A stretch of DNA of 64,000 nucleotides, taken from NCBI GenBank assembly GCA_043228905.1, contig JBHGNT010000014.1, forward strand, positions 10,416,001-10,480,000, read 5' to 3'. Of this stretch, positions 39,668 to 53,911 are shown in pieces. The first letter of the stretch is position 1. Every line of letters begins with the position of its first letter. The notes beneath the pieces were generated by a model. The model did no database searches, was not told the DNA's origin, and saw nothing but the letters and a program-made list of their open reading frames with translations. The position numbers were made by a program, and so were the translations under genes. The stretch is from Azolla caroliniana. Lineage: Eukaryota; Plantae; Polypodiophyta.

Positions 39668-39951
39668 GACATGCTCCGTATTCGAGTGGTATATCGACCC
39701 GCACTCCTTGCAAACCCGTAAGACAAAGCCTAGATAATTTGTATTAATGAGTTCAAAATACAAAGAACCTTGCACTAGGGACCAATTTCTTTATTCACAA
39801 ACAAGACATAATTACTGTGCAAAATAAAGACATCTCAAAATAAGTGAGGTAAATATAGGATTATTGATCGCTTTCATTCAACGTCAACAATTGTTTATTA
39901 CCAAGTATCATTAAAGGTAATGAAAAACTTAATTTTCTGCAAAATTTACGC

Positions 39952-40025
39952 ACTTCAATAACTCAATTGGCTAGAGTGTATGGTTGTTAAGCATAAGGTC
40001 AGAGGTTTAAGCCGTCCTTGGACCG
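39952..40025 (+). pseudogene. tRNA-Asn(GTT) pseudogene
   Basis: 74 nt collinear with the array consensus tRNA-Asn. Anticodon loop ttgttaa. A and B boxes mutated. Confidence 0.75.
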
Positions 40026-40950
40026 ACATGTCCAGATTAGATATTAAGCCCATGTACTTGAACCTATCAATACGAACTACATAATAACCCACATGAATAT
40101 ATTATAATTGTTTTACACTCTATATATGTTATTAAAGCAAAGATGAGAATACAAACCACATTATCTCATGTATTTAATTAGAAGCTAGGTAACAAGATAG
40201 ACGGATTAAAAAAGAATGACGGGCATACCCTGCTCTGAATACTCAGCAAAAACTTTGAGAGGAGTTAAAAATCAATTGATCTATAGAAGTGTTCCAATGC
40301 ACGAAATTGTAATGACACAATGGGATAAGGATAAGGAAAACAAGGTTTCTTGTAAGATTGACATACGATGCATATATAATGCACTAAAAAAACGCCTCAA
40401 TTGTTTTTTTTGGATTAATCAATTAAAACTACAAGGGGCCTTGCACTCGGTAGTTATTTTGTTATTCAAAAATAAGACATAATTTATGTGCGAAAAGGGA
40501 AATCCAAAATAAGTGAGATAAATGTGAGATTAGTGATTAGTGATTAGTGATAATGACACAATGGCTACAACATATTAAGGGTTATTAACCCTGAGATCAG
40601 AGGTTCAAGCCTTCCTTGGCGTGACATGTGAAGGTTAGATATTCAACCAAGTACTTGAACCTATAGATACAAACTACATAACAACGTCATGAATGTATGA
40701 TGATTGTTTTATAATATATGTATTTTACTAAAGCAGGACGATCGATCGATCTATAGATGTGTGCTGGCTCGACAAGGCAAATATAGGATTATTACTAAAG
40801 CAAAACGATCGATCGATCTATAGAAGTGTGCCGATTCGGCAAGTGAGCTAAATAAAGGATTATTGATTACTTCCATTTTGCGTCAACAACTCTTTATTAC
40901 CAAGTATCTTAGAAGGTAATGAGAAACATAACTTTGTGCAAGATTTATGT

Positions 40951-50000: not shown

Positions 50001-52675
50001 TGGTGCGAGGGTTATAGCATTTATAACCCTTCTGCTCGTCCGAGTAACCGACCAAGATGCACTTCTCGGCCTTTGCATCCAGCTTCCTCCTCTTCTCCTT
50101 CGGTACATGCACATACGCAATGCTATTGAACACCCTCAAGCGTCGCAAGTTCGGCTTCGTTCCGAAATATAGCTCGTGTGCCGACACTTTGTCTCCGATC
50201 CGGTTCTGGATGTATACCGCGGTCCTTACCGCCTCAGCCCAGTAGAACTTGGGCAAGCTCTTCACCTCCAGCATTGCCTGTGCCGCTTCCACAACTGACC
50301 GATTCTTCCTCTCGGCCACGCCGTTCTGCTCCGGCATGTATCTACAACTTAATTCGCGCCGAATTCCCATTTGTTGTAGATAACCGTTGAATTGACCGGA
50401 AAAGTACTCTTTCCCGCCATCCGACCGCAGGCACTTGATCTTTCGTCCCGTTTCCGTTTCCACGAACCCTTTGAGGTCCCGGAAACAGTCGAAGACTTAG
50501 ATCTTCCTCTCAATGAGGTGGATCCACGTGTGCCGCGTGTGGTCGTCAATGAAGGAGACGAAATATCGGCTCCCGCCAAGACTAACGTTTTGTGCCGGCC
50601 CCCATACATCGGAGTGTATAAGGTCGAGCTTATTCTGGCTCCGATTTCGCTCGTTGGGGAAAGGAAGTCGGTGTTGCTTCCCGAGCTGGCAGGCTTCACA
50701 AAGTTGTGCCTTTCGGCCACTAAATTTGGGCAATCCGAACACTACCTGTTTCGATTGCAGATCTTGAAGCCGCTGGTAGTTGACGTGGCCTATCCGCTTG
50801 TGCCACAAGTCGATGTCCGGCTCGGTCTTTTGTCCCTTCGCAAACATTGCGGTGCCGCCGTGAGTGGAGTCGAGGATGAACATCCTCCTGTCTCTGCGCC
50901 CTTGCGCAATCACACGGCCTTCTTCCTCAATGAAGCACCCTAGGTGTGTAAACCGAACCTCCATCCCTTGGTCGACGATCTGTCCGACCGAGACCAAGTT
51001 TTTCGTGATTGTCGGAACGTGCAACACGTTCATGAGTTTCCTTTTCTGCCCGACATGGCTAAGGGGAACTTCTCCGACACTCGCGATCGGATGCGGAGTG
51101 TCGTCTCCTGTTGCGACTACTCCAGGTTGTATCGGTTTTTCAAGGTACGAGAACCACTCCTTATGGCTCGTCATGTGGTTTGACGCACCGAAGTCTACGT
51201 ACCACACCTCGTCCGATCTCGGGGTGCTCTGTTTCATTGAGTTTGTTTCGTGTCTCGTCACGAAGACAGACCCTTTTCCAGCTCTCCCAGAGTCTTTGGC
51301 GTAGTGCGATTGCTGCCGATTTCCCTTGTGGGTATGTCCGGAGCCGTTTCCAGAACCGGTTCTCTCCGAATAGGCGCGCTTCTTCCAGCACTCACTTTCC
51401 CTGTGGCCTTTCTTGCCACAGTACCAGCACTCCGCGATGACCTTCCCTTGCCGGTTCTCATCGCTTCGACTCCCCCTGTTTCCGGAGGGTGCGGAGTTGC
51501 TGTCGGCATCTCTTCGGTGCCTTCCTCCTTGATCTCGTCGGCCGCCTTCATTGCGCCCCGACTCGCCTCGTCCTCCACGTCCACGAGGCCTATCTCCCTC
51601 CGTGTACAACATTCTACTGTCGGCGTGCGTGCTTGTAGACGCACCCGCGTGGTTCTCCTCTACCAGGAGCATCGACTGTAAGTCGAAAAAGGACGGCGTA
51701 TTCTCCCGGGTACACACAACCGTTTTGAACACTCCGAACTTTGACGCCAAACCTCCGAGACATATCTGGACCATCTCGCTCTCCTCGATGTTCACCTCTA
51801 TGGAGGCGAGGGAGTCGCGGATATCCTTGATCTTCAAGGTATAGTCCGCCACCGACAAATCGCGTTGTCATAGGTTGCTGAACTCCTGTCGGAGCTGAAG
51901 CTTCCTGGTTGTGGTGCTTACGGCGAAAATCTTTTTTAGATTTTCCCACGCACCCTTCGACGTCTTTGCATCCCGAACATAGCTTAATAGTTGTTCGCCC
52001 ACACACGATGCGAAGCAGTACAACACCCTGCTCGCCGATTGCTCCCACAACGGGAAGTCTCTGTGTGTCTATTCGGGTGCCGCGTCATTAGCTCCTTCGA
52101 CATAACTCCAGTAGCCATGCCCGAGCAGGTACTGGTGCATCTTGTAGGACCAAGACGCGTAGTTGGTTCTGTCGAGCTTCTCTGTTGGAATCGAGCTCGC
52201 CATGCATCTATCCATCGTTCTTCTTGTTCTTCTTTGTCAAGCTGTGTCGGCTGCAGAGAGGTTCTCAACTCTTGCGCTCTGATACCATGAAAAGAATAGC
52301 GTGCGGAAGCAGGTATGAAGACAGAACAGAGGAAGGAAACTCAGGTTCAATGAAGAGCTTCGGCTACACGGTATACGCGGGAGAGACAAAGAGAGTGAAA
52401 CACAGAAAAAACTCTATTCAACAATAATACTCAATCTGTACATAAGACGTGCTCAGTGAACACTTTTATACAAGTCCTGGAAGGACTGATTGAAGTACTG
52501 ACAGTACTTCAATGCTCATTAAGAGCTCCTATACTAACTCCCAAATATATTCCTCACGGAATATCTTTCCTAACGACCTCCCGGTTTACGCACTCGGCCT
52601 AACCGATCGGTCCCAGCCGATCCGGTCCTCGGCTTCTTCAGCCGATCTGGCCGATGTTGAGGTTGTCTCTCAACA
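47005..52675 (-). mobile_element. Full-length Ty1/copia family B element with TSD tcttt
   Basis: LTRs 47005-47392 and 52288-52675 (388 bp each; ~14 substitutions by manual count). TSD at 47000-47004 and 52676-52680. Perfect Met-PBS tggtatcagagc (52276-52287) and PPT 47393-47402. gag-PR-INT-RT-RH with a few stops and frameshifts. Confidence 0.97.
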
Positions 52676-53911
52676 TCTTTATTACCAAGTATTGAGAAAC
52701 ATAACTTTGTGCAAGATTTACGTAGTTCAATAGCTTAGTTGGCTAGAGTGTATGGTTGTTACACATAAGGTCCATTATGGCCATGTACTTGAACCTATCA
52801 ATATGAACTACATAAAAAACCACATGAATATATGTTGATTGTTTTATAATATAGGTATGTCATTAAAGCAAAGATGAGAATACAAACCATATTATCTCAT
52901 ATATTTCACTAGAAGTTAGATAACAAGATACACGCGCTAAAAAAGAAAGACGGGTATACCATGCACTCAATCCTCAACAAGAACTTCAAGAGGACGTAAA
53001 AATCGATTGACCTATAGAAGCGTTCCGGCTCGACAAATTGTAACGAGAGAATGGTTTAGTAAAATTGGATTCACGGATAAGAAAACAAGGTCTCTTTGAA
53101 GATTGAAATACGATGCATATATAATACACTAAAAAAATGCCTCAAACTAAATAATTTGGATAAATCAATTAAAAGTACATGGGGACTTGCACTCGATAGC
53201 TATTTCTTTATTCGACGGGAACCAACCACTGACTCACAACGAACTCCGGTGCGACCAACATCATCCACAATTACACGCATGGTCACCACTTCATCTTCGA
53301 CTTGGTAATGACCATATTGATGGAAACGGAAACGGAAACCATCATACATACCCGTTCTCCCCCTCCGATGTCAGGCTTCGGGCTGTCTATGACAGCCGAC
53401 CTATAGATCTACAACCCCCCTCCATGGCATGATGCACGGGACTGCACAAGGCAACCGGCATGGATACATGCCCCTCTCCTCCCAACCCCACGCATGTATT
53501 ATGAAGAAAATTGTGTCTCCCACCACGTAACCCTAATCTTCCCTACTCCTCTCTCCCCCCACGTAGCCTATGTGTACAAACAACGCCCTCCTCCTCCTCC
53601 TCCTCCCCCCCCTCTCTCTCTTCTCTCACTCGTTCCCCCATCCTCCTCCTCCTACCCCCTTTTTACTTTCTCAATATTACATGGATACCCCCTCCCCCTT
53701 TTTGTGTAATTCTTACTCTACCCACCCCCCTTATTTTGAAGAATTCCATTCCAAACCCCACAATTTTCTTCCATTTATCACTCTACACCTCCCCCATTAT
53801 CATCTAATTTTCATAATGCCCTTCCGACCTTTTTCAAATCCTTACCCTAATCATACCCCTTTAATTAGCCTACATCACTCTAATTATACTTATCATTCCC
53901 TCAACACATCC

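Follow-up and report, generated by a model that had tools for sequence, protein, structure and literature searches.

What is the origin of the dense group of damaged tRNA-like sequences found in the genome of the fern Azolla caroliniana, and can any of them still serve as a gene? The group lies in a stretch of 64 kb (positions 10,416,001 to 10,480,000 of the forward strand of contig JBHGNT010000014.1, assembly GCA_043228905.1), hereafter called the window, and comprises segments related to tRNA-Asn(GTT) on the + strand and to tRNA-Thr(AGT) on the − strand. An earlier note, made from the letters alone, had described it as a satellite-like higher-order array grown out of an amplified tRNA gene cluster. 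The amplification is borne out: Asn and Thr segments were multiplied together with their flanking DNA into a higher-order tandem array. Taken as a whole, the locus is most probably a dead tandem array, that is, a nuclear neighbourhood of Asn and Thr tRNA genes (tDNAs) that would have been amplified by unequal crossing-over and varied structurally before it lost homogenisation and selection and decayed.

An nhmmer search of the window with the best Asn copy recovers 12 Asn-like segments (E-values 5e-20 to 7e-3), all on the + strand and all between 39953 and 52773, with no further segment in the remaining 57 kb. A separate Thr query recovers two segments, both on the − strand (starts and ranges in Table 1). 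The approximately 12 Asn-like and two Thr-like copies listed in the earlier note are thus found again at the same coordinates, and none is found elsewhere in the 64 kb. ARAGORN calls just two tRNA genes in the window, Thr(AGT) at 42984–43059 on the − strand and Asn(GTT) at 44164–44240 on the + strand. When the copies are compared with the Rfam tRNA family RF00005 (curated gathering score of 29 bits), a check that the earlier note had proposed, one Asn and both Thr segments out of the 14 reach the threshold. Six Asn copies (starting at 39952, 40951, 42293, 43371, 45242 and 52724 in this search) score 20.8–27.4 bits, and the other segments give no RF00005 match even in a permissive run up to an E-value of 10. 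Thirteen of the tRNA-like segments are located within 6 kb (39952–45911) and the three that pass RF00005 within 1.9 kb; clustered plant tDNAs are defined as at least five tDNAs within 5 kb (PMC13578239, PMC13437025). Published surveys of such clusters discard pseudogenes (PMC13578239, PMC13437025), so that decayed arrays of this sort would escape them.

According to self-comparison, the tandem array is in three pieces with a net length of 6,992 bp, and the GC content of the first is 0.32–0.33, versus at least 0.5 in the adjoining Copia DNA. The higher-order array announced by the earlier note is real: a unit made of a tRNA gene and its spacer is repeated head to tail in layers with periods of approximately 1.0, 1.87 and 5.3 kb, at 75–91% identity over hundreds to thousands of bp. 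The conserved AT-rich spacers also noted there are confirmed by these long matches and by a 26-nt spacer motif that occurs 8 times (0 expected). The base units of approximately 1 kb (39842–40522 versus 40841–41551) are separated by a Kimura two-parameter distance (K2P) of 0.20, the copies of the 1.87-kb higher-order repeat (41659–43953 versus 43529–45827) by 0.18, and the 5.3-kb segmental duplication, whose first arm is 39737–41459, by 0.09–0.14 (against 45025–53213 with the inserts removed). The 1.87-kb and 5.3-kb layers above the base unit provide the higher-order periodicity of satellite DNA, but the locus does not form a homogenised high-copy satellite within the window, and the label "satellite" given by the earlier note is generous for approximately 7 kb and 14 copies with units that are 80–90% identical.

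Two structural types can be told apart among the Asn-like segments: full-length copies (type A, seven plus one 5' half) and copies truncated at the D loop (type B, four). Along the 1.87-kb unit, a full Asn copy (type A) is followed by a truncated one (type B), then by Thr, oppositely oriented, and then by another type A copy. In the type B copies (40562, 42651, 44523 and 45848), the acceptor 5' strand and most of the D arm are missing, and the copy is always preceded by a 13-nt leader, AATGACACAATGG, that is also spacer sequence approximately 360 nt after a type A copy. Therefore, the junction between spacer and D loop, whether produced by deletion or by recombination, seems to have arisen once and to have then been copied. 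A shorter primary unit of approximately 350 bp, in which the second type of spacer, following the ACAATGG junction, would be an older, more decayed tRNA copy, was rejected, local alignments being no better than shuffles (z −1.2 to 0.4).

In a region saturated with transposons, these repeats might also be viewed as the product of a mobile element, either a tandemised tRNA-Asn short interspersed nuclear element (SINE) or an internal repeat of a CACTA, a Helitron or a large non-autonomous long terminal repeat (LTR) element. An A-rich run, AAAAAAGAAA, found approximately 225 nt after each type A tRNA, and the unrelated, partly repeated DNA that adjoins both edges of the array would suit such an origin, which is nevertheless very improbable. 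Upstream of each tRNA, 110 bp belong to the repeat (80% identity) and are copied no less faithfully than the downstream spacer, which makes SINE-like dispersal unlikely, as a SINE would begin at the 5' end of the tRNA. Moreover, self-comparison and repeat searches revealed neither target duplications around each unit nor terminal repeats framing the array, and the cloverleaf of the consensus is complete, down to the acceptor strand on the 3' side. The presence of a second isotype, Thr, which lies on the other strand and has a terminator of its own, is a usual trait of tDNA neighbourhoods in a genome. tRNA-derived SINEs share with the array a multiplied tRNA-related sequence with A and B boxes, but they are retroposed, dispersed, start at the tRNA 5' end and are flanked by target-site duplications, whereas the array is tandem and includes an upstream leader in its repeat. 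No copy was found outside the array within the window, and metagenome scans with conserved spacer motifs gave no match.

The gene from which the Asn segments derive is still recognisable. When all 12 Asn segments are reduced to a strict majority consensus, ARAGORN calls it tRNA-Asn(GTT) with a full cloverleaf, and it does the same for the best copy once its singleton bases are corrected. The cloverleaf that the earlier note had drawn from its majority consensus therefore stands, but the sequence given there is not a strict majority: it differs from it at five positions, each being G/C where the majority has A/T, and is best read as coming closer to a reconstruction of the ancestor, as which it is plausible. 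In the six full-length copies, 72.6% of the stem cells are paired in the cloverleaf register, versus 26–54% when the register is slid by 1–3 columns, so that the ancestral fold remains visible. The consensus appears to resemble a nuclear and not a plastid tRNA-Asn. A CAA is present at −12 (−13 for the 45241 copy with the coordinates adopted there) before all six full-length type A copies examined, and the region upstream of these copies is 68–77% A+T. An AT-rich upstream region with CAA is the usual context of plant genes transcribed by RNA polymerase III (Pol III) (PMC11700998).

Two insertions interrupt the array. The larger is a Ty1/Copia LTR retrotransposon that encodes, on the − strand, the Pfam domains RVT_2, gag_pre-integrs, Pol_BBD and SH3_retrovirus, and whose reverse transcriptase is placed by a protein atlas in Streptophyta only. 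Its LTRs (388 bp, ends TG...CA) are 96.4% identical (K2P 0.037), and a 5-bp target duplication, TCTTT, is found at 47000–47004 and 52676–52680, inside an array unit. Once the element is removed, its flanks join into a continuous unit, so the array is older than the insertion; the distance between the LTRs is approximately one third of that separating the two arms of the latest duplication within the array. Ranked by K2P, the base units come first, followed by the higher-order repeat, the 5.3-kb duplication and lastly the Copia LTRs. The other insertion, of approximately 0.8 kb, is of low complexity and includes a (AAATTACA)n microsatellite (46093–46367, detected by TRF), poly-purine and poly-A runs and a long A/C run. 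A search for terminal inverted repeats by which it might be classified gave weak inverted repeats only, and it is left unclassified.

No part of the array unit shows constraint, and the tRNA parts evolve like the spacer. Compared in pairs, the type A units are on average 79.7% identical over the tRNA and 80.0% over the 60 nt before it; the values for the first 100 nt after the tRNA and for the sequence beyond are 85.4% and 81.3%, respectively. Divergence from the consensus is 0.153 in the tRNA versus 0.126–0.173 in the flanks at G/C sites, and 0.071 versus 0.053–0.095 at A/T sites; this separate comparison indicates that the extra conservation of the trailer is an effect of composition. Stems show no compensatory change above that of shuffles, which reach the observed paired share in 315/500 cases and the observed covariation in 243/500. 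The remark in the earlier note that no single Asn copy is perfect proves right, as lesions are found in every one of them. More generally, no copy of either isotype combines U8, G18, G19, U54, U55 and C56 with four intact stems, each carrying at least one lesion. G/C-to-A/T transitions amount to 0.081 per G/C site versus 0.032 per A/T site for the reverse change, and the observed/expected ratio of CpG is 0.69 in the array versus approximately 1.1 in neighbouring Copia elements. This moderate bias and the CpG depletion fit deaminated methylated cytosines and probably reflect a silent locus.

A role other than tRNA supply might be proposed for the array, which would then act as a chromatin boundary or a set of TFIIIC-only sites, or would yield small tRNA-like RNAs by way of read-through transcripts that carry an 85-nt trailer. 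A B-box-like sequence, GGTTCAAGCC, is indeed kept in several copies and conservation is highest in the first 100 nt after the tRNA, but the excess in the trailer vanishes in the comparison by site class, the spacers match no Rfam family at E-values up to 10, C/D-box motifs were not seen by eye, and constraint is not indicated for any part of the unit. Such a role is therefore highly improbable. A dicistronic tRNA-snoRNA or another structured trailer, considered because no Asn copy has a terminator before +84 and because of this same downstream conservation, was rejected in view of the lack of a spacer match in Rfam in that search and of the composition effect.

The transcription signals of the array are damaged as well. 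No Asn copy has both its A box and its B box intact, and no run of four T (T4) occurs before +84 after any of them; the first is found at +84 to +86 and one copy has none within 200 nt. The Thr copies have T-run terminators at +14 and +15. The use by TFIIIC and Pol III that the earlier note had envisaged is thus unlikely for nearly all copies, given these Asn signals and the lack of selection on the tRNA part. At most one residual Pol III unit is plausible: it could be Thr 42985–43058, the only copy that keeps both a B box and a terminator.

The locus might alternatively be a reserve tDNA cluster, mostly silenced, of which the better copies (Asn 44165, Thr 42985 and Thr 44841) would still give Pol III transcripts in some tissue, in the way described for the Ser/Tyr cluster of Arabidopsis. 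There is a precedent in the silenced clusters that are reactivated in root tips (PMC12308677). All three copies pass RF00005 at 45–50 bits, the full-length Asn copies are preceded by CAA at −12, and T4 or T5 terminators follow both Thr copies at +14/+15. However, near-universal positions or stems are damaged in all three (C56U in Asn 44165, U8A and AGC in Thr 44841, and an anticodon-stem mismatch in Thr 42985), and Asn copies never have both boxes intact nor a nearby terminator. Furthermore, the tRNA parts diverge as much as the spacer, without compensatory change, and there was no recent homogenisation, the last duplication being approximately three times older than the Copia insertion. A reserve cluster is thus improbable, and a dead array that would have no tRNA-supply function today is preferred.

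Several points weigh against a wholly dead array. Its silent state is one that we infer; the sample is small (seven type A units), with a transition-to-transversion ratio of approximately 1:1 and a moderate bias. Three copies are still above the Rfam tRNA threshold, and the terminators at +14 and +15 of the Thr copies may allow some residual transcription. In addition, foreign sequence bounds the array at approximately 39730 and at 53213, and intact copies could lie beyond.

Combined with the distances between repeats, the following scenario can be drawn for the history of the dead array. The starting segment, which would have comprised a tRNA-Asn(GTT) gene of nuclear type, the AT-rich leader with its CAA and some hundreds of bp of spacer, would have been duplicated head to tail, and a nearby tRNA-Thr(AGT) gene on the opposite strand would have been amplified along with it. 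Later rearrangements are visible in the sequence itself: the type B variant formed at a junction between spacer and D loop, the 1.87-kb higher-order unit (A, B, Thr, A) formed, and the 5.3-kb segmental duplication followed. Homogenisation and selection would then have ceased on the array, probably in methylated silent chromatin, which would account for the excess of transitions and the CpG depletion. The insertions of the 0.8-kb element and of the Copia retrotransposon were the last events, after the final duplication.

The features of the locus are listed in Table 1. Among the three copies that pass RF00005, Asn 44165 has its T loop altered by C56U and its anticodon stem by two non-canonical pairs. 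Thr 42985 keeps its B box, with a T4 run at +15, but has a non-canonical pair 28–42 in the anticodon stem and several G-U pairs. Thr 44841 has U8A, a T loop changed from UUC to AGC and one non-canonical pair, with a T5 terminator at +14.

Table 1. Segments of the array, tRNA-like copies and interrupting or adjacent features, in window coordinates
Feature	Position	Strand	nhmmer start or range (E-value)	RF00005 (bits)	Remarks
Array segment 1	39730–45937	+			Tandem units of ~1 kb (self-BLAST, direct-repeat families, K2P)
Asn type A pseudogene	39952–40025	+	39953 (7.8e-12)	27.4	Two changes in A box, C56T, C62G
Asn type B, 5'-truncated	40562–40623	+	40580 (4.6e-4)		Lacks acceptor 5' strand and D arm; behind AATGACACAATGG
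Asn type A pseudogene	40951–41021	+	40954	22.1	G52C, 3-nt deletion in T arm
Asn 5' half only	41634–41669	+	41634		Model positions 3–38 (nhmmer); fused straight to mid-spacer
Asn type A pseudogene	42293–42366	+	42294	22.2	G18C in A box, broken stems
Asn type B, 5'-truncated	42651–42707	+	42651 (3.6e-4)		
tRNA-Thr(AGT), best-preserved candidate Pol III unit	42985–43058	−	42986–43057	45.1	Called by ARAGORN
Asn type A pseudogene	43371–43434	+	43373	20.8	B box lost through a 10-nt deletion in T arm
Best Asn(GTT) copy	44165–44238	+	44165	50.4	Called by ARAGORN
Asn type B, 5'-truncated	44523–44580	+	44523 (8.6e-6)		
tRNA-Thr(AGT) pseudogene	44841–44914	−	44842–44914	49.3	
Asn type A pseudogene	45241–45314	+	45243	22.9	Recent duplicate of the 39952 copy
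Asn type B, 5'-truncated	45848–45911	+	45848 (7.3e-4)		
Unclassified insert, ~0.8 kb	45938–46758				Interrupts one unit; flanks align to the continuous unit at 40600–40700
Array segment 2	46759–47004	+			91% identity to 40654–40895
Ty1/Copia LTR retrotransposon	47005–52675	−			LTRs 47005–47392 and 52288–52675; Pfam domains
Array segment 3	52676–53213	+			Homologous to 40896–41459; holds the Asn type A remnant; ends abruptly at 53213
Asn type A remnant	52723–52773	+	52726	25.8	5' two-thirds (3' third lost)
Assembly gap (100 N)	53913–54012				700 bp beyond the right array edge

The right edge of the array is followed by CT-rich low-complexity sequence up to the assembly gap; given how near this gap lies, the visible length of the array need not be its full length on that side. 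At the left edge (approximately 39730), the adjoining DNA includes a repeat, at 38386–38849, that is also present beside two Copia copies, and a GC-rich 54-bp tandem repeat (3.3 copies) is located just left of the array at 38784–38959; the DNA around the latter recurs in inverted orientation beside two Copia copies, at 2892–3359 and 31617–31996. No Pfam family was found in the open reading frames that flank the array on both sides, and the flanks, the repeat at 38386–38849 apart, are left unclassified. Elsewhere in the window, the family of the inserted Copia element is represented by tandem or nested copies at 20334–29145 (91–96% identical), and a second Copia family by copies at 650–2832 and 29274–31459 (86% identical). 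A young and homogeneous 150-bp tandem repeat (9.0 copies, 97% matches) is located at 11104–12452; its monomer is of nucleosome size and varies far less than the units of the tRNA array. Other tandem repeats, with units of 83 bp (4.5 copies), 81 bp (5.2 copies) and 136–147 bp (TG-rich), are found within 14319–15298 and 19062–19905.

Tandem tDNA clusters are known in land plants, including Pro homoclusters, Ser/Tyr heteroclusters, clusters of Cys, Gln, Ala or Ile genes and large arrays in a moss (PMC13578239, PMC13437025, PMC10701932, PMC12652284). The same publications, among those on plant tDNA clusters that were examined, do not name any Asn/Thr cluster, the surveys leaving out pseudogenes. 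The statement of the earlier note that an Asn/Thr array of this kind was not recognised is fair, as reviews name Pro, Ser/Tyr, Cys, Gln, Ala and Ile (PMC13578239, PMC13437025, PMC10701932), although the kind itself is known. The closest likeness is with the clusters of Arabidopsis thaliana, i.e., the Ser/Tyr/Tyr cluster of chromosome 1 (27 triplet units) and the Pro and Cys clusters, which also consist of nuclear tRNA segments repeated head to tail with conserved spacers; the Ser/Tyr cluster is a heterocluster that, like the array, combines two isotypes. Its expansion has been modelled as unequal crossing-over (PMC2886086), and the Arabidopsis clusters are heterochromatic and mostly silenced (PMC12308677; PMC13578239 citing Hummel 2020). 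In contrast to these clusters, the array associates Asn(GTT) and Thr(AGT) on opposite strands, its copies are 80–90% identical instead of near-identical and are all damaged, and it is interrupted by a transposon and bears no sign of concerted evolution or recent homogenisation. It is therefore an Asn/Thr addition, at a late stage of decay, to the known tandem tDNA clusters of plants.

A likeness with plant satellites that resemble tRNA can also be considered. The satellites described by Benslimane and colleagues are reportedly short (approximately 180 bp), high-copy and only faintly similar to a tRNA; compared with them, the array has a unit of approximately 1 kb, an explicit tRNA origin and a consensus that folds into a full cloverleaf. 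The proposal that tRNA genes can give rise to tandem repeats in plants dates back to that work (Benslimane et al. 1986, Nucleic Acids Res 14:8111, PMC311838, as cited in a passage of PMC4411372).

The array shows what a tDNA cluster looks like once selection and homogenisation stop. For annotation, it implies that tRNA finders will list some array copies as genes, leading to inflated counts of tRNA genes. More than 7,500 tRNA genes and more than 10,000 tRNA-like sequences were reported in Azolla filiculoides, the only cause given being genome duplication and repeat content (10.1101/2021.12.21.473619; PMC13578239). Taken alone, the locus is ordinary, and a genome-wide pattern would be the more interesting lead. 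As a tentative and rather doubtful proposal, it may be one instance of a genome-wide habit in which nuclear tRNA genes of several isotypes would be repeatedly amplified into higher-order arrays of several kb that then die, Thr being here a passenger. If so, such arrays could be a distinct building block of fern heterochromatin, and the birth and death of arrays, in addition to or instead of whole-genome duplication, could explain the numbers of tRNA genes and tRNA-like sequences reported for that fern genome.

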